This document shows positions 1 through 45,345 of a DNA stretch of 64,000 bases, piece by piece. The position numbers and the translations under genes are program-made. Each line of letters begins with the position of its first letter. The stretch's first letter is position 1. The notes below the pieces were generated by a model, which saw only the letters and a list, made by a program, of their open reading frames with translations, ran no database searches and was not told the DNA's origin. This DNA is from Andalucia godoyi And28 (lineage: Eukaryota; Protista; Jakobida): positions 29,383 through 93,382 of the forward strand of contig VRVR01000036.1 of assembly GCA_009859145.1 (NCBI GenBank), in the 5' to 3' direction.

Positions 1-3000
1 CGTGGGCTCTCTGAGAAATCGCTAAAAACAATTCTAGCATCTTCTAACCGCGAGCGAATAACACCAGCGACGATCTCCACGAACGGGTGCTTATTCATGG
101 AGATGTGGTCTCCCTCAACCTCGATGACCTCCAAGCCGTTCTCAAAATATGGTGTCCAGGCCTCGAATGGGCGCAGTGCATCCATTGAGCGACGCACTTT
201 CGCAAATATGAATGTTCCGCGCCCCCCATAGTTCTGCGGAATATACGAAAACATCGCATCCACGTTCGAAACGAAACAATCAATGTACTTTCCGAAGATT
301 TCCGAGGAAACGTTAAGAGGAAATTCTCCACGTGATTGCCCTGCTCGAAGGATTGCTGCTTTCCTTTCTTCCTTCGACATGCTTTGCAGTCTTTCTTCGC
401 CGATTCCAGTCGCCTCTCCCCACAGGTAACTCAACACTTCAACATCATTTGTAATGCGATCTGGCATCTGATGTCCGCCAGGCGTATCAATCATGATTAA
501 GGAGGAAACAGACTGTGCGCCAATCATGCAGGCCATTTCAAAACACAACATTCCTCCGAAGGACGAACCTGCAAGGTGATAAGGGCCCGAGTAGCCTGCG
601 TCTGATGCTTCCTTCAAATACCTTTCGCACATTCCCCTGACACAAACGTCAAATTTTGCAGAAGTGCCAGCGAGGCCAAAGGATTCGAAAGAAACGACTG
701 TCCGTTCGGGTCCAAGAGCGGATACAAGAGGAACGTAGAACGCAGTCGTTCCTCCAACGGGGTGGAGTAAGAAGAGTGGAGACAGTTCTTGATTTGTCCC
801 TAGTTGCATAACGATTAGTGACTTTGGCTCCAGAGTATGAACAGGGGAGACAAAGTACAATCCTGACAAGACCTTCACTGCGAGTTTTCTTGCTGTCGAG
901 TTTTGCACAATCGCACTGATTGGAAGGCGTACTCCATAGGATTGCCGAACTTCTTCGAGAATCTGTAACGCACGAAATGAATCCCCTCCAGATCTGAAAA
1001 AATCTGCAGAGTCATCCACTGCTGTAGTAGTGTATTTCTTGAATATCCCAAGGATACGACTCGTGATGCTGGAGAGGGAAATGTCGACGGACTCCCTTTC
1101 GGAAGCATTGGCAACAACCGTCGAGCATTTTGACTGGACATTGTTCCATGCCACGTTTTCTGATGCCAGCGAATCTTCTGGACGCATGTTCGCGGAAATG
1201 ATTACATGTCTCGGCACATCATTGTAGTGTACGATGACGTATGCCAGCGCATGCACAAACTCTGTTCCTCGCAGCATCTGGTGAGTACCATGCACGCTGC
1301 TGGTTCCACCATTAAGATCTCGGTCTGTTTCAACTCCTCCGATGAAGCAAACAACAGAATCACGACCGGTCACAGAACTAGCCACAGCTGCAGTCCCGAC
1401 GCTGTAAGGACAAAATCCAACTCCGCCTAGGACTGCAGACATCGAAGACGCCACGACGACTTTTTCGAACGCAAAATGGCGAACCAAAGACCCCAGACAA
1501 GGAACTCGAGACTGGATACTCTGCTGTGTATCGTCTATCGATACTTCACGGACAGGAATGCGCGAAACGAGGCCTGAAAAGTACAGCAGCGTGACTGGAC
1601 TCTGAGATGGCAACTGCGACAGAAGACCTCGAATTTCCTCCGCATTCTTCATGTCCAGAGTGACTACATTCACAATGAATCCTTTCGCGACAGTCTCACA
1701 CAAGACACGAAACAGCCGGCGGCGCCAAACCGGAAGCATGGTATCGGATGACAGACAGAGCCACTGCGATGCATGAGGAAAAGGTGAACGAGTCGTGATG
1801 AAGAGAGTCGACACGCATGTCGCCGCTGCAGTGCAAGCTTCAATGACAAAAGAACCGAGGCGGCCGGTGCATCCCACTAGCAGCCAATCTTCGTTGCTGC
1901 TCTGATTGTTGTTGGTGATGGAGCTGGCGGTATCCACAACAGGAAGTGTGACTTTTGGTGGAGACGCTGTGAGACGGAGTGATGATGCGGGAAGCTGAGA
2001 CAGTCGGGACAGTACACGGTACCTTAACGCTGAACCGGCGAATAGCATCTCCCGACACGCCTGCGGAGCAGCTTCGGAAAATAGCGCTTCCGGAAATGGA
2101 GGAAGTAGCAGGGACTGGGCAAACGACGCTTCCATGGAATGTACAACGCACCATGGATGGCCGAGCTCCTGGCAAGCACAACGGAAAAAACACGAGACAG
2201 CAAACTCCCTCCATCGAGAATCATCAGAGAACCCAGCATCGTGACTAAGGTGGCGGGAGTCTCCGAATACCCCACGCCCAAAACATGCATATATCGTAAC
2301 ATCCCATTTGCAACGCAAGAGAACATCCTTCAGCACATCACACACACAAGCCACGTCCTTGAAATCCGCTCTGGACTGATTCTCAAACGATAGACTGAAG
2401 ACAATTTCTACTTTTGATGAACACGCCGCGGTCGAAACGTAGGTCACCAGATTGGCACCCTTTTCAGGAGGTAATATCCATGGAGACGACAATGGGAATA
2501 TAGCTTCCTTGCATAGTCCGGTGGGAGAACAAACGACGACGCCTCCAGGCATATGTTGCTGTCCTGCTTGCTCCAGCCGTTCGGAAAGGCAATCCATGTC
2601 GGTGAATACAACAGTCAGTCGAAACATCGCACGACGACGACCATCACCAGTCACAGCGTGCTCTGGATAGTGTACACTATACAAGCACAGGGAGGGGTCG
2701 ACATCATCAGCACGTCGACTGCAGCCATGAAAGACCATCCGCCTGATCGGCATCTTAGTAGAAGTGGGTTTGAAAGCACCAAATCCCAAGTAATCATTCA
2801 GAAAATGGCTCCATTCCACTTGTGCTCCCCCTACCCATGCACTGCTCAGGAGACGAATAAAGGAATCAAGAGTGCACGGTTCGGAAGGCAGCTCCATGGC
2901 AGACGAAACAGTGCTCACATTCTGATGGTGCTGTTCCGACAACAACACAAGCTGCGCTGTCGTTCCGCATTTTTCTGCAGTGATTCTCCAATGCTGCATG

Positions 3001-6000
3001 ATACTAGGATCATCAAATACAAAAACAATGTTTCTCAAAAACCGTATCATAAGCCCGATCAATTTTGAAGAATCGTCAAGCAAGGCACCTTGATTTCGGA
3101 ATGATGTGACAGCAAATGTACAATGCTCTACGAAGACGTTCCATGCACTGCCACGAACAAAGAGTACAAAATGCACTGACGGAGGGGCACTGGTTTCGCG
3201 GCAAACAACTGGCTCACTGCACACTAACTCTCCTTCAGCTGTCACTCGAACAACCAAAGATCCGCGAATTGGAAGGCACGGATAGTGCATACTCGAGCAG
3301 CATACGCTTTTTAACCAGTCCCAGTCAATCGAAGAATGCTGCTTCCTTTCTTCGTACATATATGCTTGGACCTCTACCAAATACTCTCGAAGGCGCTGTA
3401 GATCCATATGGCTCACAAGAAGAGGGAAGACCCGGCTGTCTTGCACTTGGCAGCCAGCAGGGGAAACGGTCGGTGCACACACCTGACAATCCGATTCAAT
3501 GACAGCATTGTGTGTGGACTGTTTGATAACAACATGACAATTAGTGCCGCCCATGCCGAAAGAACTAACACCTGCAACTCGAGCACCGCTCTTCGGTGGG
3601 TGCCAGGATTGCATCGTACTGTGCATAGACAATACTGCCGCATAAGAAGGATTTCGAAACCCCTCGAAATGCACGCAAGACGGCAGTACTTGGTGTTGCA
3701 TGCACACCAACGTCGAGATTAACCCGCAAACTCCCGCGGCAGCATCCGTGTGCCCAATAAGAGACTTCACAGATCCCAACACGAGCTTGCGATTTCGAGC
3801 ACCAAATACTTCAGAAAGTGCTTTCAGTTCCATTTCATCACCGAGTGCAGTTCCGGTTCCATGACATTCAATGAAGGAAACATTGTCAAACAGCTCCGAA
3901 TCCACTGTGCCAATTTGGTACGCAGATCTCAATAAATCGATTTGTGACTTCACGGAAGGAGCTGCAAAACTCACTTTCTCTGCTCCGTCGTTGTTGACAA
4001 CAGAATTTAGAATCGTCGCTACCGCGCATGTGTTCAATGCTGAACACAAGTCCTCCCTCTGGAGTATCACAACGCCGCAGCCTTCTGACGGAACAGTACC
4101 ACAAGCTGTGTGAGAAAAAGGCCTACATGTTCCATCCGGAGAGAAAATGCTTCCTTCTCGATATCGATATCCTCCAGTGCGGCTCGGATTGTAGTACACA
4201 CCCCCTGCAACCGCAATGTCACAGTCGCCATTCAAGATGGATAACCTTGCATAATGAGTCGCGACTAACGAAGAAGAGCAAGCTGTTTGGATCGTCAATG
4301 CGGGACCATGGAAATCGAAAAAATGGGCAATTCTCGTAGCAAAGAATGTGGAACCGGAGCATGTGAAGCGATGGTATTCCTTCGTCACGTCGACATGCGC
4401 AAGATTTACACTGTCTGTTTCAGAGCTGCTTCCCGTCACCCCGATAAAAATACCGATCTTGAGATGCGATGCTTTAGAAACACGGAAGGGATCAATCGAG
4501 GCATTTTGCAGCGCCATCCACACAGAGTGTATCAGTATTTTCAGTTGTGGATCCAACAAGGAAACGTCGTCGGAAGATAATTGGAGGAACCCTCGATCAA
4601 ATGAGAACTCGAGATTTCCGCCACTGCAGACAAGTTCTCCATCCTGAGCTTTTCCTTGACAACGAGAAATACACGGATCGCAGGATCGGTACCGGTCGAT
4701 GAGATCGTCTGTGGTTCCACACCCAGGCAGTTCTCCCCAGAACCCAACAATAGCAATCGCACTCGCGTTTGCGTTCGTATTCAAAAACACTGGCTTTGCC
4801 TCGACTTGACGACAAGACAATAGTAGCTCGCGACCGTTGCTAGCACTGTCCGCGGGGGGGTATGCGGGGTGACAGCGAAGCCGATCGCATATCATGGCGT
4901 GCTGCGTCTCAATTGTCGGAAACTGCAACAAATCCGTTCTGCTGACCTTGGCTTCTGGAAAGCGATCCCTATAGAGGATGAGCAAGCGTGCCAATAATAT
5001 TGAGCTGCCACCTGCATCAAAAAATCCGACGGACGGTGCATGAACGTCCATAGGCAAAAGAGATCTCCAGCATTCGGTGATCACCTGAAGTATCGCCTGC
5101 AACCGCGACGTCGTGCTCAAGCCTGGAAAGCTTGGAATTTCGGGAAAACGACCAGCCTCCGGACTTACAGACACTCGTTGAAAACTGTGGTGAGAGTCAG
5201 ACGATGGATTCTTTTCAAAAAGACGACCCAGCTGCTTTCGATCAAGCTTTTTGTGTTCCGACACAGGAAAGCTGTCTACAACTCGTATCTGTGAAGGAAT
5301 CATGTAGTGAGGTACTCGCTTTCGAAGGCTGGTCCTAAATTCATGAACATCAAAGGAGTCCCTTGCATTATTTTGAAGGGATACCACAGCAAACAACATG
5401 GTGTTGTGGCCTCGTTGCTCGCAGAAAGCCGCTGCAAACTTGATGTGTTCATGCTTCATCAGCTCGTTTTCCACTTCCTCCAGCGACACACGGAATCCAG
5501 AAATTTTCACCAATCCATCCCGTCGCGAGATCCAATAATACTTTCCATACATAAAGCGACAAATATCGCCGGTTTTGTAAACGACACCTATTCCGGACAA
5601 TTGAACGAACTTGTCTGCAGTAAGAGCGGCATCCCTCCAGTAACCTGCCCCCACAAGAATGCCCGAAACACACAGCTCTCCTGGTATTCCATGAGGAAGA
5701 ATGTTACAACACCGCGAAGCACAGAACAGTAACGCGTTGTCAATGGGTGTGCCAATACCTAAGCACGACCTCAAACCGCTCGCTTCCAAAACATCCTCAT
5801 CCTGAAGAGGGCCTAGGCATGCTGAATAATCCGTCGCCTCCGTTGGCCCATAGACATTGAACACTTTCCCGAACGCATTGATCAGTCGAGAAGCGAGGTC
5901 GGTCTGTAACGCTTCCCCTCCCGCCACGACCGTGGCACTACTATCGCCCCGCCATTTTGCATCTAATATCACTCGAAGCAGCGTTGGGGTGGCTTGAATG

Positions 6001-9000
6001 AAATTTGCTTTCCAAGTCTGGAGCAAATCGACAACAACAAAAGGATCCTGGTTTTGGTGGGGAAGCGAAACAACCACAGTGCCTCCTGCGAATAGAGTGC
6101 CCCATATCTCGACGATGGACATGTCATGCGTAAACGGCGAAAGTGACAGGCATCTCGTGTTGCTGCTCATCTCAAATCTCTTCAAACAGAATTTCATCAA
6201 GTTCAATAGTCCTGCATGCAAAACGACTGGTCCCTTTGGTTGTCCTGTAGAACCGGATGTGAACAACACATATGCAATGTGGCTGTGGGCTCGACGAGGG
6301 TCAGTGAGAGCATTCAAAATCTCCGTGCTATCAATAAAGGATCCATTTTGCAAGTGTCCGTGTTGCAAAAACCTATCAAGAAGAATCAGCTTGCGGAGCT
6401 TCGAAAATGCGGCAGAATCGCGGCAACAGTCGACGGACACCAAGGATAGACACACTTGTGGTTGAAGAAGTTCCAGCAGGTTTTGCAGACGGGAAATTGG
6501 CATCCCTGAATCCAGTATGGAATAAGGAAATCCCGCTAGCCAGCATGCAAACATGCACACGACGCAAAAAGCACTTCGAGGAAGAAAGATGCAGATGGGC
6601 GTGTTTTGTGAGACGTCTAAAGTGGCAGACTCCGCGAGAATCAGATTCGCAACTTCCATCGCCAACGAAGCAAACTGAAAATACGATAGACAGAATGTGC
6701 CATCAGAATTACATACTGCAAATTTGCTTCGCCATTGGCACCCAGCACAGCTTAAATCCAGAATGTGTTTCACGATAGCAGGCGCTCCACGAAACTCTGT
6801 CTCACTCGATTTTTTTGACGCAAAATATTCATAGAAACGCACCTCGTCGTCAAGCAAAAAAGAAAACGGCACCGCTCTAGAGAATCCGAGGTTGACAACT
6901 CGAGAGAGAAAATGGCGAAAACGAACCGGAAGAGATCGTAGGAACTGCACCAGATCAGAATCATTCACGTCGTCCGGAATAAACTTCACCTCTAGGATTA
7001 CTTTTCCATGAGTATACGTGCAAACAAGCTGCATGGGCCACAGAGACGCCTGCACAGGATAAGACGGAACGTTTTCTGCTGACGGAATCCGATCGTCCTC
7101 CGTGATGTAGTTGGCAATAGAGACCGAACGATGAACGCCTGATGGTGCAGATGCTCTGCTCGTCACCAAGGCCGACCCTGCGGCGGCGGCACTGGCACGG
7201 CAGGCTGTAACAATGGTGCGCAGGCTCTCCGAGACATTCATGACAAACATCTTGTCGAAATCGACTGGCTTGCCGTCAACAACCATTGAAACCGTAAGAG
7301 GCATTAACTGAACACAAGTGCCTATCAATGAGGAACACGGTCTGTCTCTGGATCGGAAATCCACCGGCACAGAAAGGACTACTTCATCCAAAGAAAACAT
7401 CTCCCCAATCATGAATGCCCAGGCGGAAAACAGGAAAGTCGCAAAAGTGACACGGAGATCCGTAGAGAACTGTCGCAGAAGAACACTTTCGCTCGCATCA
7501 ACTGTGCATTGCGCAGACTCTCCAACATCATCCGAAAAGCGGCCACGAACAGTTGTGCATTTTGAAATACCTTCTGGAAGAATCGTGATTCCCTCTATCG
7601 CCCGCGCTGTGCGCGCCCACGCAAAATACGATGGTGGGTCAGCAGTTGACGGAGGCGATCCCGGATACCTTGAAATGTAATGGACCATCATTTGCACGAG
7701 GGAGGATAGCCCTCGTGCGTCGGCAATGAGATGATGGCAGCAGCAGACAAGCAACAGAGTCGTTTCGGCGCTGACATCCGAGACTGGAGGATGCAGTCGA
7801 AGAAGCGCAATCCGAATAAGCGGTCTTGATAGAGTTTCGAAAGGTTTCCGGACGAATGCTGATAAAATGTCGCTCTGGGACTGATCAGAAGAGGTAAACC
7901 TGACATACTCCATTACACACCTCTCCGCAAGAACAGCAAATCGTTCCTGGTCCAGAACGTGTGCAACAAACCGTTCTGCATCTTTTTCAAAGATGCAACG
8001 AACGGCATCAGCGCGACTGGAAACGTACAGCAGGGATTGCAGTACCAGCTCACGGCTGGTAGACGGCGCAACAGTGGCCATTTTGAAAAAATTGTACGCC
8101 GTGGAATACGGGAATTCTTCGCAATCCAAAAGGATAGGAAGCTGAAATGAAGAAGGTGGAAATGCGCACGCGGAGTTTTGTGCAGCATGCAACCGCATAC
8201 CATTTCCCGGGTCTATATTGAGCGACGACAGTGACACGTCCTTCTTCCTCGAATCCGAAAGTGATGCATCATAAAGCGCTGGGCGCATGGATAGGACCTG
8301 GTCCGAAAACAGAAACGTCATGGGATGGCAGAACCTAGTACGCACGCGACGGAGCACAGAACACAATTTCATAACGAATTCATTGGCGCTTCCAAATGCC
8401 CCAACAAATTCTGCAGAAGGCAGCCATTCTCGCGCAAATTTTGAGAGCGTGGAACTGCTACCGAGTTCAATGCAAAGCAGAGAATGAGGGACGAAGGAAA
8501 GTCTCTGCATGGCAGCATTAAAATCAACAATTTCTCGGAAATTGCGCCACAAGTATGCAGCTTCCAACGGCCCATGCAATAAATCGCCAGTTACCGAAGA
8601 TATCATCGTGCAGGTGCAAGATGCGGTGGGCCCAAACCGTGTTTCAGGAACGACAATCTCTTCGATGATGTGCTGAAAGTCTGCATGTGCGCTGTCCAAG
8701 AAGCGCGAGTGAAAGGCAGGAAGCTGCGGAAGGATACAGCAAGCAACACCGATCTCGCCAGTCAGAAACGTCAGGAGTGCTTGGACATCTTCCCGCGCAC
8801 CACACACCACAGTCTGACAAGGAGAGTTCTTGCCACAGATATCCACATGCTTCCGGAGAGGAGACGTTTCGCAGGCTTTCTCAAAAACATCTGCAGAACA
8901 AAAGCACGCCATCATCGATGTCTCAACATCTCGCAGACAATGCATGGCGAGCACGGATCGATGAAACACAATGCAAACTGCAGTGTCCAGGGACAGAAAA

Positions 9001-10910
9001 CCAGAAATCAATAATGAGCATATCTCTCCAAGACTGTGTCCAAGGGCGAATTTTGGAGAAACTCCGCAACATTTCAGCAAATGGCACAGAGAATACTGTG
9101 TCGCGAATATGCACAAAGGAACGAGGGATGGATGGTCCATGCTCGCGATCGAAAACTCCGCGTCATCGTTGAGGTAACCATTGAAATGCGCACAAGGTTT
9201 GGGTACACCTAACAGACGCCCAGCGATGCTGTCAACTTTGTCGAATGCATCCGCAAAGACTGGCGAGCAAGCATACAGGTTCTTCATATTGTCCTTTTGC
9301 AGAAATGACCCCTGTCCAGGGAATAAGAACACGACACTGACCGAAGAATCAGCGTTCTCACAATCTGCATCAGATTCGACTTGCAAGTTCGCCGCTATGC
9401 GCTTTCCGTCTCTCGAAAACACTGCAGGAATTAGGTTGTTGTTTGCATCAAACGCCCCGCGACCGCAGATTTGCAGCGGACATGCAAGATCGACGGCTGC
9501 GCAATGATCTACGGATCGCGAAACATCTTGCAACTGGATCTGTGAGGCACTCGTGTTGACGAAAACACTTTCGGTTTCTCGTGAAACATTCAGAATCATA
9601 TGGTCTGACCGCAACACGGCAGGATATCGCCAGGGTGCAGAATGTGCATCCTGAACACTGGATAACACAACATGCACAATTTCACCTGCAAAACCAGTTG
9701 CATGGACAGCAGCAAAGTATTGTGAACGTTGGGATGGCTCAAATCCTCGATCGCATAGCTGCAAGCAGGATTTCAGATTTGCATTCCGTAGCCTGTCGTC
9801 CAAGGTCGAGCAACCAGCATCAGGGGGAATAAAATTGCGCAAAACACACAAACACACTTTCAAAACGGACAGAAGTCCGGATGATGCTTCAGTATGCCCA
9901 AGAAGCGTCTTGCTTCGTCCAACCAGTAAAGGAGAATGATTGGAACGAGCGCCATATGTCGCACATAAAGCGGTCCACTCTGCCTCATCGCCGTCAGTGG
10001 ATCCAACTCCGTGAGACTCGATCAGGACGAAATCGTTGAAAGAACGCAAAAGAGGGTGGTTGCACGTTTTCTGGATCAAGCTTTTTTGTGAAGCGGCACT
10101 TGGAGACGCGAATGGTCTGCCAGGCCGTCCAGAATGCGCAGTTTTCCCTTCAACAAGATAACAGAGCGGAGGAAAAGAGCGCAGCGCTAGGTGCTGACCG
10201 GCCTGCAGATCCTGTGCGTTGGCAACAGATCCAATCAGCAAAGTTACAATCCCGTCGGATCGCACGTATCCGTTTCGCGATGCACAAAATGGGGCGCATT
10301 CACCGCTCGTGGAGAGCAGACCGCAGCTCGACAAAACCTCGCTCATTGCCTCTGATAGCAAATTGAATCCCGAAACAAACGCAAATCTGCAAATTCCGCG
10401 ACGAATGTCCTCCATGGCCTGGACGAGCGCAATAAGACCAGAAGCGCACGTAGCCTTAACAGTTAAACATGGGCCCTGGAAATCAAAAGTGCTTGAAATC
10501 CTCCCACCAAGACGAGAGTCGGTCGTCACACCCGCGACGTTACCCCCCGCACAATCCATACTTTGCACACTGCGAGGAGTAACGTCGTTGGATCTCTCGT
10601 CAAAAACCCCGACGTACACTCCAACATCCGCGGATCCCACTAGGTCACACAAAGACATGCCTGCATAATCTATCGCTTTCAAGACCGTGTCGAGCAAAGC
10701 TTTCTCTGCAAAAGGAACAGCGTCTCTTCCTTGTGAACAGCCAATCCCTGGAAACACCTTATCACACAAAAACTGAGAAGGAAAATCGATCAGCGGCGAG
10801 GTTGGTCTTTGTCTTGTGCCGGTGAGAAGCTGCCAAAACGAACTCTCATCGGCGACGGAACCTGGAAGCACCAAGCCAAAACCGAGGACGCCTATGGAAG
10901 TATTCTGCAT
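1..10910 (-). CDS. Hybrid type I PKS-NRPS megasynthase, KS-AT-C-A-PCP-KS-(degenerate AT)-KR-ACP-TE; >=3636 aa, intronless, 3' end beyond the left edge of the window
   Basis: Manual translation of the minus frame from ATG 10910 (first ATG after an upstream in-frame TGA) finds no stop down to position 1. KS1: MQNTSIGVLGFGLVLPG, GPCLTVKATCASG (Cys 10448), IESHGVGS, KTLLGHTEASSG. AT1: VFLFPGQGS, GHSLGE (9041), PAFHS. C: AYNFF, CHHLIADA (7736), LIGTCVQLMPL. A: LSYFQF, AYVLFTSGSTGQPKG, NVYGPTEAT, GELCVSG, YKTGD, VKISGFRV, PHYMIP. PCP: FFDAGGSS (Ser 5003). KS2: IAIVG, LDPQ, IQTACSSS (Cys 4280), ECHGTGT, GSVKSLIGH, SSFGMGGTN. KR: LLVGCTGRLG, SSMSAVLGGVGFCPY. ACP: FFRSGGDS (Ser 980). TE: PLFLLHPVGG, GPYHLAGSSFGG (Ser 563), IDTP, EGDH (His 107). 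Confidence 0.95.
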   Translation of the reverse strand, partial: MQNTSIGVLGFGLVLPGSVADESSFWQLLTGTRQRPTSPLIDFPSQFLCDKVFPGIGCSQGRDAVPFAEKALLDTVLKAIDYAGMSLCDLVGSADVGVYVGVFDERSNDVTPRSVQSMDCAGGNVAGVTTDSRLGGRISSTFDFQGPCLTVKATCASGLIALVQAMEDIRRGICRFAFVSGFNLLSEAMSEVLSSCGLLSTSGECAPFCASRNGYVRSDGIVTLLIGSVANAQDLQAGQHLALRSFPPLCYLVEGKTAHSGRPGRPFASPSAASQKSLIQKTCNHPLLRSFNDFVLIESHGVGSTDGDEAEWTALCATYGARSNHSPLLVGRSKTLLGHTEASSGLLSVLKVCLCVLRNFIPPDAGCSTLDDRLRNANLKSCLQLCDRGFEPSQRSQYFAAVHATGFAGEIVHVVLSSVQDAHSAPWRYPAVLRSDHMILNVSRETESVFVNTSASQIQLQDVSRSVDHCAAVDLACPLQICGRGAFDANNNLIPAVFSRDGKRIAANLQVESDADCENADSSVSVVFLFPGQGSFLQKDNMKNLYACSPVFADAFDKVDSIAGRLLGVPKPCAHFNGYLNDDAEFSIASMDHPSLVPLCIFATQYSLCHLLKCCGVSPKFALGHSLGEICSLLISGFLSLDTAVCIVFHRSVLAMHCLRDVETSMMACFCSADVFEKACETSPLRKHVDICGKNSPCQTVVCGAREDVQALLTFLTGEIGVACCILPQLPAFHSRFLDSAHADFQHIIEEIVVPETRFGPTASCTCTMISSVTGDLLHGPLEAAYLWRNFREIVDFNAAMQRLSFVPHSLLCIELGSSSTLSKFAREWLPSAEFVGAFGSANEFVMKLCSVLRRVRTRFCHPMTFLFSDQVLSMRPALYDASLSDSRKKDVSLSSLNIDPGNGMRLHAAQNSACAFPPSSFQLPILLDCEEFPYSTAYNFFKMATVAPSTSRELVLQSLLYVSSRADAVRCIFEKDAERFVAHVLDQERFAVLAERCVMEYVRFTSSDQSQSDILSAFVRKPFETLSRPLIRIALLRLHPPVSDVSAETTLLLVCCCHHLIADARGLSSLVQMMVHYISRYPGSPPSTADPPSYFAWARTARAIEGITILPEGISKCTTVRGRFSDDVGESAQCTVDASESVLLRQFSTDLRVTFATFLFSAWAFMIGEMFSLDEVVLSVPVDFRSRDRPCSSLIGTCVQLMPLTVSMVVDGKPVDFDKMFVMNVSESLRTIVTACRASAAAAGSALVTSRASAPSGVHRSVSIANYITEDDRIPSAENVPSYPVQASLWPMQLVCTYTHGKVILEVKFIPDDVNDSDLVQFLRSLPVRFRHFLSRVVNLGFSRAVPFSFLLDDEVRFYEYFASKKSSETEFRGAPAIVKHILDLSCAGCQWRSKFAVCNSDGTFCLSYFQFASLAMEVANLILAESATLDVSQNTPICIFLPRSAFCVVCMFACWLAGFPYSILDSGMPISRLQNLLELLQPQVCLSLVSVDCCRDSAAFSKLRKLILLDRFLQHGHLQNGSFIDSTEILNALTDPRRAHSHIAYVLFTSGSTGQPKGPVVLHAGLLNLMKFCLKRFEMSSNTRCLSLSPFTHDMSIVEIWGTLFAGGTVVVSLPHQNQDPFVVVDLLQTWKANFIQATPTLLRVILDAKWRGDSSATVVAGGEALQTDLASRLINAFGKVFNVYGPTEATDYSACLGPLQDEDVLEASGLRSCLGIGTPIDNALLFCASRCCNILPHGIPGELCVSGILVGAGYWRDAALTADKFVQLSGIGVVYKTGDICRFMYGKYYWISRRDGLVKISGFRVSLEEVENELMKHEHIKFAAAFCEQRGHNTMLFAVVSLQNNARDSFDVHEFRTSLRKRVPHYMIPSQIRVVDSFPVSEHKKLDRKQLGRLFEKNPSSDSHHSFQRVSVSPEAGRFPEIPSFPGLSTTSRLQAILQVITECWRSLLPMDVHAPSVGFFDAGGSSILLARLLILYRDRFPEAKVSRTDLLQFPTIETQHAMICDRLRCHPAYPPADSASNGRELLLSCRQVEAKPVFLNTNANASAIAIVGFWGELPGCGTTDDLIDRYRSCDPCISRCQGKAQDGELVCSGGNLEFSFDRGFLQLSSDDVSLLDPQLKILIHSVWMALQNASIDPFRVSKASHLKIGIFIGVTGSSSETDSVNLAHVDVTKEYHRFTCSGSTFFATRIAHFFDFHGPALTIQTACSSSLVATHYARLSILNGDCDIAVAGGVYYNPSRTGGYRYREGSIFSPDGTCRPFSHTACGTVPSEGCGVVILQREDLCSALNTCAVATILNSVVNNDGAEKVSFAAPSVKSQIDLLRSAYQIGTVDSELFDNVSFIECHGTGTALGDEMELKALSEVFGARNRKLVLGSVKSLIGHTDAAAGVCGLISTLVCMQHQVLPSCVHFEGFRNPSYAAVLSMHSTMQSWHPPKSGARVAGVSSFGMGGTNCHVVIKQSTHNAVIESDCQVCAPTVSPAGCQVQDSRVFPLLVSHMDLQRLREYLVEVQAYMYEERKQHSSIDWDWLKSVCCSSMHYPCLPIRGSLVVRVTAEGELVCSEPVVCRETSAPPSVHFVLFVRGSAWNVFVEHCTFAVTSFRNQGALLDDSSKLIGLMIRFLRNIVFVFDDPSIMQHWRITAEKCGTTAQLVLLSEQHHQNVSTVSSAMELPSEPCTLDSFIRLLSSAWVGGAQVEWSHFLNDYLGFGAFKPTSTKMPIRRMVFHGCSRRADDVDPSLCLYSVHYPEHAVTGDGRRRAMFRLTVVFTDMDCLSERLEQAGQQHMPGGVVVCSPTGLCKEAIFPLSSPWILPPEKGANLVTYVSTAACSSKVEIVFSLSFENQSRADFKDVACVCDVLKDVLLRCKWDVTIYACFGRGVFGDSRHLSHDAGFSDDSRWREFAVSCFFRCACQELGHPWCVVHSMEASFAQSLLLPPFPEALFSEAAPQACREMLFAGSALRYRVLSRLSQLPASSLRLTASPPKVTLPVVDTASSITNNNQSSNEDWLLVGCTGRLGSFVIEACTAAATCVSTLFITTRSPFPHASQWLCLSSDTMLPVWRRRLFRVLCETVAKGFIVNVVTLDMKNAEEIRGLLSQLPSQSPVTLLYFSGLVSRIPVREVSIDDTQQSIQSRVPCLGSLVRHFAFEKVVVASSMSAVLGGVGFCPYSVGTAAVASSVTGRDSVVCFIGGVETDRDLNGGTSSVHGTHQMLRGTEFVHALAYVIVHYNDVPRHVIISANMRPEDSLASENVAWNNVQSKCSTVVANASERESVDISLSSITSRILGIFKKYTTTAVDDSADFFRSGGDSFRALQILEEVRQSYGVRLPISAIVQNSTARKLAVKVLSGLYFVSPVHTLEPKSLIVMQLGTNQELSPLFLLHPVGGTTAFYVPLVSALGPERTVVSFESFGLAGTSAKFDVCVRGMCERYLKEASDAGYSGPYHLAGSSFGGMLCFEMACMIGAQSVSSLIMIDTPGGHQMPDRITNDVEVLSYLWGEATGIGEERLQSMSKEERKAAILRAGQSRGEFPLNVSSEIFGKYIDCFVSNVDAMFSYIPQNYGGRGTFIFAKVRRSMDALRPFEAWTPYFENGLEVIEVEGDHISMNKHPFVEIVAGVIRSRLEDARIVFSDFSESP

Positions 10911-11265
10911 GAAATCGTGGTGCCGAGCGAAAGCATACCGTGAAATTATGTTTTTAAAAAAAGTGCAAAAACAGTGGACTTGCGCTTCTCAAACTGAGCA
11001 CAAAAAAAAAAAAAACTGCGTTTCAACGAAGATGATGCAGCACCCCTACCACCATCCAAGTGCTTATTCCTTTTTTTTTTTTTTTTTGTTGAAACCAATG
11101 CTTGTCTAAACTCCAAAGAGACGTGCAAAGACAAAGTCGCCCGTATTATTTTGCTGATACAACGGGGGGGAAACGCCTGCTAATACACGATGAGAAATGA
11201 TCAAAGATGATTGTGGGTTTGTGGTTGCACGTCTTCATTATACACTGACCATGCATTTCTGGGAA

Positions 11266-11327
11266 GAGACATGCATATTCAGTCTTGCATCCCGTTGCCG
11301 GGAAGGGGATAGGCCCCAACACGTCTC
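11266..11327 (-). ncRNA. Candidate omega-RNA-like structured element directly 3' of the Fanzor relic
   Basis: GAGACGTG (11327-11320) pairs with CATGTCTC (11273-11266), 8 bp with one G-U. This stem encloses GGGG-CCTAT-CCCC and a TCCCG-GCAA-CGGGA GNRA hairpin, and starts about 10 nt after the NGARNII stop. Expression is not shown. Confidence 0.4.
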
Positions 11328-11337
11328 ACGGCGTTCT

Positions 11338-11530
11338 TCAGATAATGTTCCGCGCTCCGTTCTCAATCTCGATCAATCTGTGAGCCACTTTCTCGGCGTG
11401 ACACGTTGTTCCTGAGAAGGGTGCATTTTTTGATTCTGACGGCCCTAGCAGCAGGCGCTTTCGTGTCCTCAGTTGCAGCGATTGATGCAACTGGAGATGC
11501 GAGAGGAAGAGGCGGTAGGCGTAGTGACAC
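11338..11530 (-). pseudogene. Fanzor/TnpB-family relic (3' part, frameshifted)
   Basis: Minus strand reads HYAYRLFLSH ... SESK; then RRESGSQIDRD (each Cys of CxxCG is one substitution away) and, after a 1-nt frameshift, NGARNII*. This matches the HYxFRxxL...SKTC...CxxCGxxxDRDxNGARNI layout of the Fanzor RuvC/zinc-finger C-terminus. Confidence 0.7.
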
Positions 11531-12169
11531 GTGGTCTCTTAGGAGGTCTGCGGGACCTAGGAGGCCCTGTATCGAGCGGCGTAGGCGTAGGCGTAGGCGA
11601 ATGCGTCATCCCAGCGCACTCACGCCCATATTTGAATTAAAAAGTGAAACCAACGAATGATAGAATAGATGGCTACGGATGCTGCGTTAAAGAGTGTCGA
11701 AAAACTGCGGAGCCTGTGTCACCAGCTGAATTCTGGCCGAGCGTGCGTAAGCACGAATTCCCTGTGAAGCAAACGTGCTCGTGTCGGCCGGTATCGACCG
11801 TGTCTGTTCATGGATACTTCCGAATGCATGACAATTTCGTGTCATTATTCGACGGCCGGCTCGGAAGGAGGAAAAGAAAAAAGGAAGGGAAGGTCTTTTT
11901 CCAGTTTTCTTGCCTCCGCTGGTCTACATCATTCCCATTCTGCTTTTCTTGGATGACAATTTCTTTCCGCCTCCACGGCCCTTGAAAAAAGTCGAGATCA
12001 CAAGACTTCCTCCCCCACAACACAACACAACACACACACGCACACACACCCTCTCTTCCCACGCATCTCTTACTCAAAAAACAATACTTGTTTCTGCCTC
12101 GGCTGTGATGATCACTTGGGGAAAAGACTCATCGAGAAGAGAAACTGTTCTTTTGTTTTCAAATACGAA

Positions 12170-13276
12170 ATGCATTCCTCCGCAGAAAACGGATTGGCGG
12201 GCATGCATTCTCCAAACCATTCTCTGTCATGGATATTTGCGTCCATTATTTCGTGTGTGCTATTCGGTGGTGGATCCGTTATCCTAGCGTTTGCGAGTTC
12301 TTCAACCACCACATTCATGTCTGCTCTGTCTGCAGCTATGGTTCTCTTCTTTACGTACCTCATTTGTGGAATATTTGGTGTTCTTTTGCATGCGGTGCTT
12401 GGCTTTCCTTCCACATCATCCACCGGGCATTCAAAATTCGATCGTCTCTTTTGGAATAGACTGCACTTATCCGAGAGAACTGCATTCAAAGTACTTGTAT
12501 GCTGCCTGTCTGCTGTCTGCAATGCAGGAGCAATCGTCTGTATAAATTCGGCGTTCTTCATTGATATTACGTGGGCAGGTGTGGTCGTGTCGCTTTCTGC
12601 ACTCTCGTCCGTGTTTGTAGCCGTCGTCTCGTATTGTTTGTTTCGTGAAAAGATGCCCGTGTTTGCAGTTTCTGCGGTGGTTTTGTTGGTTGTCGGCGTC
12701 ATATTAATTGGACTTTCCAGTGGCTCCAGTTCGTCGTCGTCCGCAGTGGCTCTTGGGTTTTCTGCAGCATTGCTGTTCGGGGTTGCTCAGTTGTGCCAGA
12801 AGGCATGCTCTGCATTTTGGAGCATGCCACCTATCCCGGTGACTCTTCTGTTTTTGGTGTGCAATGTGCTGCCGTTCGCTGCCCTCCTGATTTTTGAGCT
12901 GTCTCTTCGGAATTTTATGGAAGGAATAGACTGGTTCAACGGACTGTTGGTTGCATCCGCCGGTGTGATCAATTGTGTTGGCTTTGTCCTGATGATTTTC
13001 GCTGTCACTGTGGGCCAAGCAGGCGTTGCTGTTTCTATTCCGAATTGCCAAGGGGGACTTGTTCTTGCGTTTTTTGCAGCTTACAGCGGAACCGTCCCTC
13101 CCACAATGGCCATCGCAGGTAGTTGTGTTCTGGTGTTTGCCGTATGTTTTTTGATAGTGATGCAGCACTGGACTTCCAGAAAAAACTTAACCACAACCCC
13201 GCTCGCTGCAGACGACACACATGATAGTCGATCCGTGAACACAGCGTCATTGATTCTCGTAAAGTCAGCGACGTGA
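12170..13276 (+). CDS. EamA/DMT-superfamily transporter (~368 aa)
   Basis: About 10 hydrophobic helices in two repeats, with the DMT-type motif SYCLFREKMPVFAVSAVVLLVVGVILI. ATG 12170 preferred over the TTG start in the track. Confidence 0.8.
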   Translation: MHSSAENGLAGMHSPNHSLSWIFASIISCVLFGGGSVILAFASSSTTTFMSALSAAMVLFFTYLICGIFGVLLHAVLGFPSTSSTGHSKFDRLFWNRLHLSERTAFKVLVCCLSAVCNAGAIVCINSAFFIDITWAGVVVSLSALSSVFVAVVSYCLFREKMPVFAVSAVVLLVVGVILIGLSSGSSSSSSAVALGFSAALLFGVAQLCQKACSAFWSMPPIPVTLLFLVCNVLPFAALLIFELSLRNFMEGIDWFNGLLVASAGVINCVGFVLMIFAVTVGQAGVAVSIPNCQGGLVLAFFAAYSGTVPPTMAIAGSCVLVFAVCFLIVMQHWTSRKNLTTTPLAADDTHDSRSVNTASLILVKSAT

Positions 13277-13504
13277 TTAGTCAGCTTCGAAAATACTTTA
13301 CCAGTATACACAATACCAATAGAACGTGTGTGTTCATCACCATGAGTAAATTGATGGATCGTCCAAGTATGGTACTGGGAAAAAAGCGAGCATACGATGT
13401 ATCAACAATTCAGATTGCGTTCCAGCGTTGGATACGGCGGTACAAAGCTACACAGAGATAGCGCCCGCCCCCTCCCTCTCCGAAAAATTACTAAAATGCA
13501 CAGA

Positions 13505-14758
13505 TTAAATCAACAATTCCGTCAGCAACCGGGCAATGATGAGTGTCAACAAGCTGTATGACAGTTTCAGCATCATCCCTCGTTCGACATCAAGATTCAG
13601 CAACGTGAAACCCGGATGCGGAATCAAGCTCAGGTGTGCAACGAATGACGCAACCCGTTCGGGGGAAACGTCCTTTCTGTACCTGCGTTCCTGCAACATA
13701 CTGAGAAACGTGACAAGTCGAAAGTACTCCATACGAATCACAGAGGCGTGCCACAAAGCGAACCCCACAGAAAGCACATCCGCGCATGCAATCAGCACTG
13801 GCCAGTACACGGAGTTTTCATTGAAGGAGACAACGATGAAGAATGACAAGACGATCCCAGGAGCCGACAGCAGCAGCATGGAAATCCAATATGGAGTGAA
13901 TCTCCTGGACACAGCCGCCGTCTCCTCCACAATGGCCATGACTTCGTCAAGGATCTTGTCCAGATCTGGCCTTTCCATGGAAACAACATTTCGCAACGTG
14001 ACGTGACGCAACGCCAGCACACGAGAAACGAAAGCACAGACTGTCGCAGAGAACGTCATGTACGCCACGTTGTACAGGATGATGAAGGCACTGCAAAACA
14101 TGAACAAGACAGCATATGTGCGAGATTCATATCCGATCCAAGGAGTCTCAGAAACAAACACGCTGACGCAAATAAGGATCCACGATCCTAAAAAGAAAGT
14201 GCAAAGTTGATTTGCAAGTTGTCGAGCTTCCGAGCGAGAGCCAAGAGACAGAGAGAGCACACGTTCAATGCTCCCTGTGGAGAAGTACCAGTTAAGATAG
14301 ATGGCGGAGACCACAGGTCGTAAATTGAAGAACATGACCAGAAGCCGGGTCCTCCAGTCATAGTCATGAGGGCTCTCATGAGAGCCCAGCACTATCTTGG
14401 CATCTCCAATCTCCACAAACACCGTAACAATGTCAAGAATTAGCGTGATGGAGACGAACAGCAGCGCAAGCACTGCAATGCAAATCTTGCAAACAGTGCG
14501 ACGTCCAACGCACAGTCCCATGGCTTTTGCAACAAGTCGAATTGGCCGCCACATCTGTTCAGTTTGTTGAAACGCAACTCGATTGCTGCCGTCCGCTCCA
14601 CGAGAGGAGGATGCAAAGTTGACCAGTGGAAGCGCTTCCTCTCGTGAAAGAAGATTCGTCCACAACGTACTGGCGCTTTCATCATACGGCGAGGGTGACG
14701 GAGATCGGAACGCAGAATCTGCCTCCCTGTTTTGATCATTCCGATCTCGCACGTTCAT
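13505..14758 (-). CDS. 7TM gustatory-receptor-like (GRL/7TMIC, DUF3537-like) membrane protein, 417 aa
   Basis: Seven hydrophobic segments, a long helical TM4-TM5 loop, and C-terminal PGFTLLNLDVERGMMLKLSYSLLTLIIARL resembling the split TM7a/7b of insect GR and plant DUF3537 proteins. Confidence 0.62.
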   Translation of the reverse strand: MNVRDRNDQNREADSAFRSPSPSPYDESASTLWTNLLSREEALPLVNFASSSRGADGSNRVAFQQTEQMWRPIRLVAKAMGLCVGRRTVCKICIAVLALLFVSITLILDIVTVFVEIGDAKIVLGSHESPHDYDWRTRLLVMFFNLRPVVSAIYLNWYFSTGSIERVLSLSLGSRSEARQLANQLCTFFLGSWILICVSVFVSETPWIGYESRTYAVLFMFCSAFIILYNVAYMTFSATVCAFVSRVLALRHVTLRNVVSMERPDLDKILDEVMAIVEETAAVSRRFTPYWISMLLLSAPGIVLSFFIVVSFNENSVYWPVLIACADVLSVGFALWHASVIRMEYFRLVTFLSMLQERRYRKDVSPERVASFVAHLSLIPHPGFTLLNLDVERGMMLKLSYSLLTLIIARLLTELLI

Positions 14759-15049
14759 TTTCTAATTCTTTTTTATCAACGAAAACAAATTATTAAAAAA
14801 ATTATGTTTCACGACAAGCATCGAAAAGAAGCTTTTTCAACTGGTCTTTGCATCGTTTTTTGGCAAAATGCTTGAAACCTCTAACGTAGGTGGGGCGGGG
14901 GCGGGGGGTTCAATCCGGCTAGAACTAAATAAAAACATCTTTCCCCTCTTCCGTGATTTTACGTTTTATTTGTTCCTATTTCGTTTTGATTTGGCTGTTG
15001 TCGTCGTCCATAACTCGGATTTTTTTGTTGCGAGTCGGTCACTCTTGGA

Positions 15050-15520
15050 AGCACGTTCGAAAACTGCACGAACAATCTGAAAGAAGTACGGTGTTTCAAG
15101 CCAGGTGCTTTGGAAACGGGTTGCATGCGGAAAGTTACAGTGTATCCGTACTTTCTTCTTTTCGAGCGACTCTACAAATAGCGCCCCAACTTTGGCGAGC
15201 TTTCTGCGCGAACTATGATGCCGCATATTGCTGCAAAGGCTTGAAACGTCCAACATGCTGTGCCGTGGCCAACGTCGCATTCGATGCAAGACTGCACGTC
15301 ATACGCCAGACGCCGACCCGGGGGCCCACTTCCAATTCCGCCCAGATATTTGCTGCACAATGGAAGCGAGTATGGAACTGCTGTTGTCATTGTGACAGAG
15401 GAATACACATCAAAGACATGCCGGGTGCGTGGGAACATTCATCAGAAATTGGGAGGGTGCAAGATGCTTGCGATGTCCAGCATGCCCAGCGGTGATGGAT
15501 CGAACATCATGTTTCGTGTT
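15050..15520 (+). pseudogene. Fanzor/TnpB-family relic (RuvC-II and zinc-finger region, multiple frameshifts)
   Basis: Joined across frames: LASFL/ANYDA/ILLQRLETSNMLCRGQRRIRCKTARH...HFQFR/YLLHNGSEYGTAVVIVTEEYTSKTCRVRGNIHQKLGGCK/LRCPACPAVMDR/NIMFR. The DxNGAR segment is deleted. A second RSKTAR motif lies at about 15056-15073. Confidence 0.85.
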
Positions 15521-15896
15521 TCCTCCCTTTTTTATATTTCTTCTTCCTTTTATTTATCTGAGTCTGCGGGAGTTGGTCGTGCTGCGCTCGTATGGAGCGA
15601 AACTAAACAGCTCGCCGCAGACCATCTACGACAAAAGGTTTGACGTCCCATCGACAGAAGGAGCTCGCGACAGGTACAATCGTTTGCTTGCATCGGAACC
15701 AGCTGAACACGTCAAATTTAAGATCGCGGACAAAAAAGCAGGAGAGCCTCATGGCCCGCTCCTCCTTCTCCCGCACACAGCAAAAACGGGAGTGAGATAC
15801 ATGCCCGCGAAAAGTTGCGGAGTTGCTTCATGAATATCAGAGCACTCCAGCCTCGTCGTTGTGAAATATTGGGTTACCAAACAGTTCTGTGCAAGC

Positions 15897-17763
15897 ATGG
15901 TGCATTTTCCATCTGCTGGAAAAGATAAAGCAACTGGGTTAGGGGAGAGCCGCCTCACGACTCTCGCGTTCGTCATGCTGGAGCTCTGCGATCAGATGGT
16001 CGCGGAATTCGTGTTCACCATCGGTGCCTATATGGTTATGGATTTGGGCAAAGTACCCCGAAACGAGGTTGGGTTGTTCGCTGGAGTGCTTTCCGGCGTT
16101 TACGGAACCACTCAGGCCATTTTCAGGTATGATTGTTCTACTCGGAAACCGCAGTTCGATTGCTGCATTCTTTCGTCCGAAGCGGGGAGTGGTTTATATA
16201 TTGACTTGCTTTCATGATGGATTCTGCATAGTCCGGTTTGGGGGAAAGTTTCGGATAACTTTGGACGACGAGTCTTCCTTTTGGCAGGCATTCTGCTCTC
16301 TGCATTTGCAATGATTGGGCTGGGATGCTGTCAATCTCTTGGTGCGGCGATTGCCGTGCGTGCTTTACAAGGCGCCGTATCAGGTATGCTTCTGCTGCGT
16401 GCCGGTTTTTTCTTTTTCTTTTTTCTTGCTCTGGAAGCGGTGTCTCGTGTGTAATAACTGTTCTTTTAGGAAATGCTTCGATTTTGAAGGCATCTGTTGC
16501 CGATGTCACGTTGACACTTCCAAGCCAAAAGGTTGCAGGTCTTTGGAGCAGCTGGGGCCTCGCGTGGAGCCTTGGGCGGATAGGTATGTAATCCACAACT
16601 TCCCCCCCCCCCCCCCATCCTTTCTTCATTTTTTTATTTTATTCTATTTTATTTTTTTGTTGAAGTTGAAAAGGTTGCTGATATCCTCCTTGAATTTTCT
16701 GTTTGCGCGTATAGGAGGCGCCGTAATTGCAGGCTTTTTGTGCAGACCTGCCAAGTCCTATCCTACAGCGTTCTCGGAAGATTCCGTTTGGGGCAATTTT
16801 CCATACTTACTTCCGTGCATGGTGGCGGGTACCGTCATGTTAGTAACCTTTGCTATGTCTTGGTTTTGGTATCCGGAAACTCTATTAAGGGCCCTCGAAC
16901 CGAAGGATGGAGTGACAAGCATGTCGTCGCAGATGGATCATGGTTCCTGCATTGCCTCAACACAGACAAAAGGGGAGGAACTGACTAGTCTTGCAAACCT
17001 TGGTGCGGGGTGCGGGGGAGATATTGCTTCGTCTGACGAGAGAACGACTTTGTTGTCCGCTTCAGAGAAGACGAAGGACAAGAAGAAGCAGAAACGCCCA
17101 GGAAAGTCTATCTTTCTGAAGCTCCTCAAAATTCCTACTGTTTTGCTGTTTTCATTTATCACTCAAATAATGTGGTTCACGTACATTATGTTTGATGAAG
17201 CCTTTGGCATCTGGGCTATATCAGATGGCGGTTTTCGGTTCACTCCGGCTGATCTTGGATATTTTTTTGCTGCCAACGGAGCGATCATTCTTCTCGTCCA
17301 GTTCTTCTTGTATAAGCACATTGCTGCCAACATTTCACTGATCTCGCAGTTTTCGTTTGGTGCTCTATTGAACGCCGTGTTCTACTCGCTGTACCCCTTG
17401 TACGCTATGGCGTTGTCCCATTCTGTTGCGCTTGGTTGGTTTTCGTTGATTGCGGGGACGGCCTGTCTTATCGTGTCGGCCAACTCTGCACTGCTGTCAT
17501 TCAACACCATTGTGAATGCATCGACATCAGATGCTACTTCCTTTGGAGCGTTGAATGGTCTGCTTCAAGTATACATCGGTATTGCCAAAAGCGCAGGAGC
17601 CTTTGTTGGTGGCGTGATTGTCGCTTGGGAACTAAACAACGGTCTCGGATTTCCCTTTAATTCGTGGTTTATCTTTTTGCTGCTTGCTGTCCTACAGATT
17701 TTCGTTGCTGCACCAGGGTTTATTTTCAAAAAAGTCCTGCTTCGGCCTCTTGATGTCGCATAG
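15897..17763 (+). CDS. MFS transporter (ZIFL/YCR023C-like), 4 exons: 15897-16126, 16232-16383, 16470-16583, 16715-17763 (514 aa)
   Basis: Removing three GT-AG introns (16127-16231, 16384-16469, 16584-16714; all with GTATG donors) gives a 1545-nt open frame. It contains MFS motif A (WGKVSDNFGRR), RALQG, and GFLCRPAKSYP. Confidence 0.85.

Positions 17764-17985: not shown

Positions 17986-17987
<2 letters not shown>

Positions 17988-18063
<76 letters not shown>
17988..18063. repeat. (CT)n microsatellite
   Basis: Uninterrupted TC dinucleotide run between two convergent genes. Confidence 0.95.

Positions 18064-27160: not shown

Positions 27161-27219
<59 letters not shown>

Positions 27220-45312: not shown

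Positions 45313-45345
<33 letters not shown>

Follow-up and report, generated by a model that had tools for sequence, protein, structure and literature searches.

To our knowledge, enzymes that combine polyketide with non-ribosomal peptide chemistry have been studied extensively in bacteria and fungi, and very few of them have been characterised in protists or animals. Bacterial hybrids of polyketide synthases (PKS) and non-ribosomal peptide synthetases (NRPS) join condensation (C), adenylation (A) and peptidyl carrier (PCP) domains to a ketosynthase (KS), an acyltransferase (AT), a ketoreductase (KR), an acyl carrier (ACP) and a thioesterase (TE) in the order C-A-PCP-KS-AT-(KR)-ACP-(TE). Fungal PKS-NRPS enzymes have the order KS-AT-DH-MT-KR-ACP-C-A-T-R, where DH, MT and R denote dehydratase, methyltransferase and reductase, and T a carrier. 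The nemamide synthases PKS-1 and NRPS-1 of Caenorhabditis elegans possess divergent domains, stretches without homology, domains that are out of order and A domains with unpredictable substrates; they are two much larger proteins than the enzyme described below and are assisted by at least five enzymes in trans (PMC8363725). We analysed a 64,000-nucleotide stretch of the jakobid protist Andalucia godoyi And28 (contig VRVR01000036.1 of assembly GCA_009859145.1, positions 29,383 to 93,382 of the forward strand), which is referred to as the window. At its left edge, on the minus strand, it carries the open reading frame (ORF) of a hybrid PKS-NRPS megasynthase at 3..10910. With modest confidence, we consider this to be an intact, selectively maintained eukaryotic gene for a thiotemplate enzyme of 3,647 residues that mixes polyketide and non-ribosomal peptide chemistry according to the working scheme outlined below.

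Open reading frame, domains and active sites

An earlier reading of the DNA sequence alone (the sequence-only reading) had claimed a single ORF of at least 3636 codons. Exact translation of complement(3..10910) indeed yielded 3,636 codons with zero in-frame stops. The other five frames of 1..10910 contain 84–130 stops each, and their longest open run comprises 183 codons. At the empirical local stop rate, the chance of a stop-free frame of this length is in the order of 10^-51. The frame opens at 10988, after a TAA/TAG stop at 10988-10990; its first ATG is at 10910, and the 26 codons upstream of it contain no Met. At the other end, the ORF passes base 1 of the window. The protein database holds a copy, P0122, which is unnamed, has EukProt as its only source, comprises 3,563 residues and is 100% identical to the megasynthase. 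Its C-terminal end, ...SESPRAITGNPLCDL, extends 11 residues past the window edge, which gives a total length of 3,647 residues. The model of P0122 begins at Met85 of the ORF, so that 84 residues (10659-10910, minus strand) are dropped and KS1 is cut into. Because residues 5-84 of the ORF align with the N-terminal part of the KS profile, the ATG at 10910 is preferable as start codon; the start of the source gene model, 84 codons late, is judged to be wrong. The gene had also been described as absent from the ORF track. This absence is an artefact: the program-made list omits ORFs that touch the window edge, as this one does, and the source proteome does contain an annotation of the gene.

Profile searches gave the domain order KS-AT-C-A-T-KS-[519 residues without recognisable domain]-KR-T-TE. 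For the whole protein, the Pfam E-values were 2.6e-74 for KS (two copies), 9.7e-54 for AMP-binding, 5.7e-50 for Ketoacyl-synt_C, 4.8e-18 for Acyl_transf_1, 2.5e-17 for PP-binding (two copies), 3.2e-11 for Condensation, 6.4e-10 for Thioesterase, 3.5e-6 for KR and 1.9e-5 for AMP-binding_C. All of these scores exceed the curated cut-offs. Thus, the parts KS-AT-C-A-T-KS and KR-T-TE of the order proposed by the sequence-only reading were recovered, and the second AT, which it had listed as a remnant, was the only claimed domain without profile support. In order to locate the active-site residues, each domain was aligned to its counterparts in 239 database relatives; the alignments comprised 273 KS and 60 AT domains. 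The catalytic residues that had been read from both KS domains, AT, C, A, both carriers and TE are all present in these alignments.

KS1 (9615..10898, minus strand like all domains of the protein; residues 5-432) gave Pfam matches of 2e-28 and 1e-16 on the excised piece and is 27-30% identical to bacterial KS domains. Its residues Cys155, His300 and His339 align with invariant columns of the KS alignment. The domain is divergent: the N-terminal motif EA..DPQ.R is deleted, and GTNAH reads GEIVH. AT1 (8343..9365, residues 516-856, Pfam 4.8e-18) is the sole acyltransferase. It contains GHSLGE at 624-629 (Ser626), the conserved Arg in FHRS, and PAFHS. According to established specificity rules for AT domains, these motifs are of the malonyl type. 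KS1-AT1 is collinear with the KS-AT didomains of DEBS and CurL in the PDB. The C domain (6741..8117, residues 932 to about 1390, Pfam 1.6e-13 on the excised piece) contains HHLIAD at 1059-1064; the rest of it is highly divergent, with about 20% identity to bacterial C domains. The A domain (5226..6740, residues 1391-1895, Pfam 9.7e-54, TIGR01733 8.5e-79) has intact motifs A3, A4, A5, A7, A8 and A10, including the Lys of A10. It is followed by the carrier T1, a PCP (4860..5090, residues 1941-2017), whose attachment Ser lies in FFDAGGSSI, with GGSS at 1967.

KS2 (3471..4763, residues 2050-2480, Pfam 2.6e-74) is 37-40% identical to bacterial hybrids. QTACSSS at 2208 (Cys2211), His2350 and His2387 all align with invariant columns of the 273 KS domains. 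The KR (1353..1916, residues 2999-3186) was detected with 9.9e-8 by Pfam on the excised piece and with 1.4e-13 by our own KR profile; it keeps the NADPH-binding Rossmann motif GCTGRLG as well as the catalytic Ser and Tyr. The attachment Ser of carrier T2 (876..1079, residues 3278-3345) is in FFRSGGDSF, with GGDS at 3308. T2 fits a PCP-type profile better than an ACP-type profile, with 40.4 versus 28.8 bits for the domain and 31.7 versus 20.6 bits in the scan of the whole protein. The TE (3..833, residues 3360-3636 and onward, Pfam 3.2e-12 on the excised piece) has a complete triad consisting of the Ser in GSSFGG at 3448, the Asp in MIDTPG and the His in GDHISM. It is closest to C-terminal TEs of NRPS, with 29% identity over 263 residues to the terminal TE of P0162.

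The conservation pattern indicates that these active sites are under selection. Of the columns with a conservation of 90% or more in homologues, KS2 keeps a fraction of 0.78, compared to an overall consensus identity of 0.38. The corresponding values are 0.86 (57/66) and 0.32 for A, 0.77 and 0.30 for AT1, and 0.77 and 0.31 for TE. Conserved columns are therefore kept two to three times above average positions, which argues for purifying selection on catalysis. The megasynthase gene is real and the enzyme is probably functional, as judged from its reading frame and its conserved residues.

KS2 starts at about residue 2050, directly downstream of the A-PCP unit, whose carrier ends at about 2017. 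The sequence-only reading had assigned to it the signatures of KS domains that accept a PCP-bound chain. The three strings, QTACSS, GYRYREGSIFSPDG and NNDGAEKVSFAAPS, were found verbatim. Of 22 hybrid KS domains located after an A-PCP unit, 63% have a Gln before TACS, compared with 5% of 180 ordinary PKS KS domains. The same contrast was observed for Y.Y.EG, for NNDG followed by one residue and a Lys, and for APS, each of which is present in the majority of the 22 PCP-fed domains and rare in the 180 others. In a distance-based (neighbour-joining) tree of 89 KS domains from a bacterial sample, the nearest clade of KS2 consisted mostly of hybrid KS domains in 46/60 bootstraps. KS1 is located elsewhere in this tree on a long branch, so that the two domains are not recent duplicates. 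Furthermore, when a 1,090-residue query spanning A-T-KS was searched, bacterial hybrids aligned collinearly with 94-99% of it. All these features identify KS2, on sequence criteria, as a ketosynthase of the PCP-fed (NRPS-to-PKS) type.

The second PKS module and the carrier-less KS1-AT1

Between KS2 and KR lies a stretch of 518 residues without a recognisable domain (1917..3470, minus strand, residues 2481-2998). For residues 2475-3005, there was no Pfam match at E<=10, no NCBIfam match at E<=1, and no match at E<=100 to an AT profile built from 80 AT domains. In a forced MAFFT alignment to AT domains, FVLFVRGSAW at 2581-2590 represents a faint trace of an AT start, and the position of GHS reads SEQ; no AT active site is present in the alignment. 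The stretch begins like a linker domain, continues with the FVLFVRGSAW trace and a motif resembling a post-AT linker, and ends with about 290 residues, which may be the structural subdomain of the KR. The post-AT-linker-like motif, LSSAWVGGAQVEWSHF (2793..2867, minus strand, residues 2688-2705 within 2682-2706), was picked up by three independent profiles, namely by hhalign against AT domains, by an AT-to-KR gap profile and by a KS-to-KR gap profile. Each of these matches is weak (E 0.004-0.02, from a single sequence). The motif corresponds to the linker that follows the AT or, in AT-less modules, the KS flanking region. An AlphaFold2 model computed from the single sequence of residues 2475-3270 had a pLDDT (predicted local distance difference test) of 36 and was discarded as unusable.

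The spacing of 519 residues between KS2 and KR was compared with a sample of modules. It is inside the range of AT-less modules (287-920, median 408) and well short of cis-AT modules, which in the sample have about 316 residues between AT and KR in addition to the AT itself. The AT that is located between KS and KR in a canonical cis-AT module was not found in module 2. The AT remnant claimed by the sequence-only reading thus escaped detection by Pfam, NCBIfam and our own AT profile, and hhalign found only the short post-AT-linker motif. The negative profile searches, the loss of GHS and the AT-less spacing argue that module 2 effectively lacks an AT; no more than a vestige of about 90 residues and the post-AT-linker motif would remain.

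The oddest feature of the megasynthase, which the sequence-only reading had not mentioned, is a carrier-less KS1-AT1 that adjoins a C domain. The C domain follows about 75 residues after AT1. This linker (8118..8342, minus strand) contains no carrier domain and gave no Pfam match at E<=10. A search of the whole protein with two carrier profiles and a motif scan found no third carrier, only T1 and T2. The megasynthase therefore departs from the usual rule of one carrier per condensing domain.

Proposed reaction order and alternative explanations

By thiotemplate logic, and by collinearity with bacterial matches such as P0002, P0003 and P0016, the order C-A-T-KS-(no AT)-KR-T-TE is that of a familiar bacterial NRPS-to-PKS termination unit. 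In the working scheme, the A domain would activate an amino acid and load it onto T1, where the C domain would acylate the amino group using a donor that is not encoded in cis. KS2 would take the (acyl)aminoacyl chain from T1 and condense it with malonate on T2. The KR may reduce the new beta-keto group, and the TE would free the product by hydrolysis or by ring closure to a lactam or lactone. T2 would most likely be loaded by AT1; this is the simplest assignment because AT1 is the only acyltransferase and possesses malonyl-type motifs. KS1, which has a complete active site and no carrier, would most likely carry out a second elongation step, or a priming step, on a carrier that is either shared or free-standing. 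As product, the scheme predicts a small gamma-amino-beta-hydroxy/keto acid, free or N-acylated, or its lactam; it is probably a small molecule that has not yet been described. The possibility of an undescribed pathway had been raised by the sequence-only reading and agrees with the searches, in which no described counterpart was found.

Several observations weigh against an intact enzyme that operates in this way. The specificity residues of the A domain, read by anchoring on its motifs, would be D-M-V-T-V-A-V-D-Y-K; this code fits no specificity known to us, and no substrate was predicted. In an alignment that rests on a 37-bit profile match, the catalytic Lys of the KR is replaced by Arg3135 and the catalytic Asn by Thr3173. 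Because of these two replacements, reduction is uncertain and may not occur. KS1 keeps only 0.60 of the conserved columns and lacks the conserved N-terminal motif. The C domain keeps 16/37 conserved columns (43%), as judged versus 8 homologues only. The codon bias of the gene is weaker than that of its neighbours, with a GC content at third codon positions of 0.48 versus 0.54-0.63. Its relative synonymous codon usage correlates with that of the neighbours at 0.73, versus 0.90 in a control in which one half of the neighbours was correlated with the other. Among 239 relatives annotated with our own profiles, none has an AT joined directly to C, and a text search of the literature found no paper with the architecture strings KS-AT-C-A-T or KS-AT-C-A-PCP. 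Finally, no orthologue was found among 5.8 billion public proteins. In these searches, the 1,090-residue query (A-T-KS) matched proteins of at most 1,908 residues, with candidate length apparently limited to about 1.75 times that of the query, and a 2,480-residue query recovered the self-hit P0122.

With a carrier-less KS-AT abutting C and no precedent found for it, the proposed division of labour is conjectural. A more far-reaching proposal is that the protein is a lineage-restricted, one-protein assembly line with new wiring in a deeply branching, nearly intronless protist. A carrier-less KS-AT would be fused to C, and the single AT would serve a carrier at a distance of about 2,400 residues, within an otherwise AT-less NRPS-to-PKS module, yielding a hybrid metabolite. 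We regard this proposal as tentative and rather doubtful. If the enzyme is active, it would be a compact natural case of an AT that acts across modules within one polypeptide.

Among the alternatives, the one that survives best assumes that the domains are used in the order in which they are written, PKS to NRPS to PKS. KS1-AT1 would be an iterative mini-PKS that operates on a carrier in trans, either a free cellular ACP or, in a dimer, the T2 that belongs to the partner subunit. The resulting chain would be attached by the C domain to the T1-bound amino acid, and KS2, KR and TE would complete a longer-chain lipo- or polyketide-amino-acid hybrid. Such a role is consistent with the retained Cys, His and His of KS1, with the intact AT1 and with the alignment of KS1-AT1 to DEBS and CurL as a normal condensing didomain; it would also supply the acyl donor that the C domain needs and that is not encoded in cis. 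However, no carrier is located between AT1 and C, KS1 is not accompanied by reductive domains, and no discrete ACP or phosphopantetheinyl transferase gene was found within the 64-kb window. Moreover, KS1 is the most eroded catalytic domain apart from C (0.60 of the conserved columns kept), and its N-terminal motif is deleted. We consider this order of use unlikely, though it deserves some weight.

Less probable still is a decaying relic of an old transfer. The frame would be open and several domains dead (AT2 lost; KR, C and KS1 inactive), so that no hybrid metabolite would be made; or a subset of the domains, for example A-T, would be kept for another role. The missing AT2, the Lys-to-Arg and Asn-to-Thr replacements in the KR, the divergence of C and KS1, the weak codon bias and the lack of an orthologue anywhere in the protein collection all fit this explanation. 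It is difficult to reconcile with a 10.9-kb open frame, which is unexpected without selection (about 10^-51), and with the conserved columns, which are kept two to three times above average positions. Furthermore, every nucleophile or general base that was checked is present in KS1, AT1, C, A, T1, KS2, T2 and TE. A relic therefore seems improbable, and an intact enzyme that follows the working scheme remains the preferred reading.

Genomic surroundings, origin and comparison with known systems

The rest of the 64-kb window contains about 17 further long ORFs on both strands, approximately one per 3.5 kb, all of them apparently single-exon. Because the neighbours are also without introns, the intronless state of the megasynthase gene is uninformative with respect to its origin. 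The neighbours include a UTP20 homologue, a RabGAP-TBC protein, a centrosomin-motif-1 (CM1) protein, a PUF protein and seven Myb-domain proteins. The GC content of the window is about 0.50 throughout, and it is the same in every domain of the megasynthase. The ORF, its domains and these neighbours agree with the earlier description as a giant single-exon hybrid PKS-NRPS gene in a protist-like eukaryotic genome. Contamination by bacteria, or a chimeric assembly in which the ORF is joined to eukaryotic DNA, would account for the bacterial identity of all closest homologues and for the position at the window edge with only one flank visible, but it is hardly credible given a GC content of 0.49-0.50 in the gene and the next 50 kb that is uniform across all domains, codon preferences that follow those of the neighbours (r=0.73), an upstream spacer without a surplus of bacterial promoter or terminator matches, a flank that carries the UTP20, RabGAP-TBC, CM1, PUF and Myb genes, the inclusion of the gene in the source's own annotation, and the lack of any bacterial protein above 40% identity, unlike what a contaminant from a sampled phylum would show. 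Composition, codon preferences, the upstream spacer and the eukaryotic neighbours thus establish that the megasynthase gene is resident in a eukaryotic chromosome and not a contaminant. Its weak codon bias is compatible with low expression, with relaxed codon selection or with incomplete adaptation after an old transfer. The rare codons ATA, CTA, TTA, GTA and AAA are two to three times commoner in the megasynthase (3-10910) than in 12170-63645.

A spacer of 1.26 kb (10911..12169), which is presumed to be the promoter region, is shared with a divergent neighbour. The latter (12170..13276, plus strand) codes for a membrane protein of 368 residues with a weak EamA/DMT match (Pfam EamA E=3.2e-4, 21.4 bits, below the cut-off of 28.2). 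It is a possible exporter of the product and was not counted as part of the system. This sub-threshold EamA-like transporter was the only candidate found in the window for a biosynthetic cluster around the megasynthase. No phosphopantetheinyl transferase gene was found in the 64-kb window, and neither Rfam families nor tRNAs were found in it.

The UTP20 homologue (20514-26789, minus strand, 2,091 residues, Pfam UTP20_C 5.5e-11) is highly divergent. A search of 1.8 billion representative proteins with its C-terminal 1,198 residues found only two metagenomic fragments, with 29-30% identity. This divergence points to a host lineage that would be very fast-evolving or very isolated. A database search with the RabGAP neighbour returned only the protein itself. 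Within the protein collection, these proteins are found in EukProt only. In GC and intron content, the window differs from Mastigamoeba balamuthi (60.7% GC, 3.4 introns per gene) and from the BaSk metamonads (30-40% GC), and Giardia, trichomonads, kinetoplastids, coccidia and Blastocystis do not fit it with respect to composition, strand organisation, introns or the lack of close relatives. Its gene and intron densities resemble those published for Corallochytrium limacisporum (24.1 Mb, 7,535 genes, 0.0 introns per CDS kb; PMC5560861). A literature search found no paper that connects Corallochytrium or Mastigamoeba to a PKS of its own. The seven Myb genes are located within 41 kb, at 18244-19500(-), 35398-36840(+), 37735-39774(+), 44474-45682(+), 52898-53812(+), 55066-56283(+) and 57344-59296(+). 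Three of them, and a fourth more loosely, share a near-identical R2R3-like block, KWT.DED.RL…ACYQHWFRVL.PQISK…GRTDTQCRARWLDI. Two have another block in common, NW..KA..VGK..ADQVYQHWHRVLCCT, and one has a C-terminal telobox-like repeat. This arrangement suggests that a transcription-factor family has expanded locally. Immediately before one Myb gene and reaching into it, the long ORFs 51978-53009 (+) and 52850-53812 (+) share about 160 bases that are read in different frames; this may be explained by a rare intron, by a frameshift or by an upstream ORF that is spurious.

In the region 14,900-17,800, an ORF of 119 residues (15284-15643, plus strand) gave a sub-threshold match to the Cas12f1-like/OrfB zinc ribbon PF07282 (E=2.8e-4, 21 bits). 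The 3 kb around it contain only short or unassignable ORFs. The match may be due to chance or to a decayed TnpB/Fanzor-like element. From 18 kb on, many spacers contain microsatellites, among others at 17989-18063, 27161-27220, 29416-29481, 61683-61759 and 63813-63877. They are perfect or near-perfect repeats of types such as (TC)37, (TTG)20, (AG)33, (CT)16(CA)23 and (TAT)21. Over positions 1-17,988, a region that covers the megasynthase gene in full, Tandem Repeats Finder detected none.

With respect to the origin of the megasynthase, the matches that follow the self-hit are bacterial or metagenomic, have 27-40% local identity and are spread over many phyla. Of the best 240 matches, 239 are prokaryotic or metagenomic and one is fungal, with 26% identity; none is from a nematode. 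In comparisons with PDB structures, a bacterial modular PKS gave 304 bits for KS2, animal fatty acid synthase (FAS) about 180 bits and fungal PsoA 172 bits. KS1-AT1 scored 190 bits with DEBS, 162 bits with a Dictyostelium PKS, 149 bits with LovB and 123 bits with animal FAS. These scores and the best matches favour a bacterial ancestry of both halves. Weighing against it are the deep divergence, the spread of the matches over many phyla without a standout donor lineage, and the host-like composition. The horizontal acquisition suggested by the sequence-only reading is consistent with the bacterial matches and with the position of KS2 in the bacterial hybrid-KS group; the low identity (27-40%), the missing donor lineage and the bacterial-only sample of the tree weaken the case for it. 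We regard acquisition from bacteria as plausible and rather likely, albeit unproven; the transfer, if it happened, is ancient. The gene is complete, looks functional and is without an orthologue in about 5.8 billion proteins. If it is active, a new metabolite would be expected from a eukaryotic lineage about which little is known.

Compared to the nemamide synthases, which are likened here by description only, the megasynthase shares the eukaryotic hybrid type, the divergent domains, a stretch without homology, the odd domain order and an unpredictable A domain; in contrast to them, it is one smaller protein. With fungal PKS-NRPS enzymes (PsoA, LovB-like), it shares a single eukaryotic polypeptide, an N-terminal KS-AT and a later C-A-T. 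Their architecture was not found in it: DH, MT and an ACP before C are missing, and C-A-T is followed by a second KS and by KR-T-TE instead of a reductase or Dieckmann end. The similarity to AT-less (trans-AT type) KS-KR-ACP modules consists in the 519-residue spacing, which is in their range, and in the W..G..V.W motif after the KS flanking region. In contrast to these modules, the motif of the megasynthase is about 80 residues farther from the KS, KS2 is PCP-fed, and the AT is located about 1,700 residues upstream in the same polypeptide and not on a separate protein. The closest resemblance is to bacterial hybrids with the order C-A-PCP-KS-AT-(KR)-ACP-(TE), such as P0002 (Burkholderia glumae 'polyketide synthase'), P0003 (Chloroflexi), P0016 (Streptomyces clavuligerus NRPS/type I PKS) and P0140 (Streptomyces griseoincarnatus). 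With these the megasynthase has in common the collinear A-T-KS, the QTACS, Y.Y.EG, NNDG..K and APS states of KS2 and the NRPS-type TE. It differs from them in its identity of 27-40%, in its eukaryotic host, in lacking the AT that the bacterial PKS module has of its own, and in the carrier-less KS-AT fused upstream of C, which was found in none of them. Judged by its domains and motifs, the megasynthase would work like a bacterial hybrid NRPS-PKS and would represent a variant architecture of this known enzyme class.

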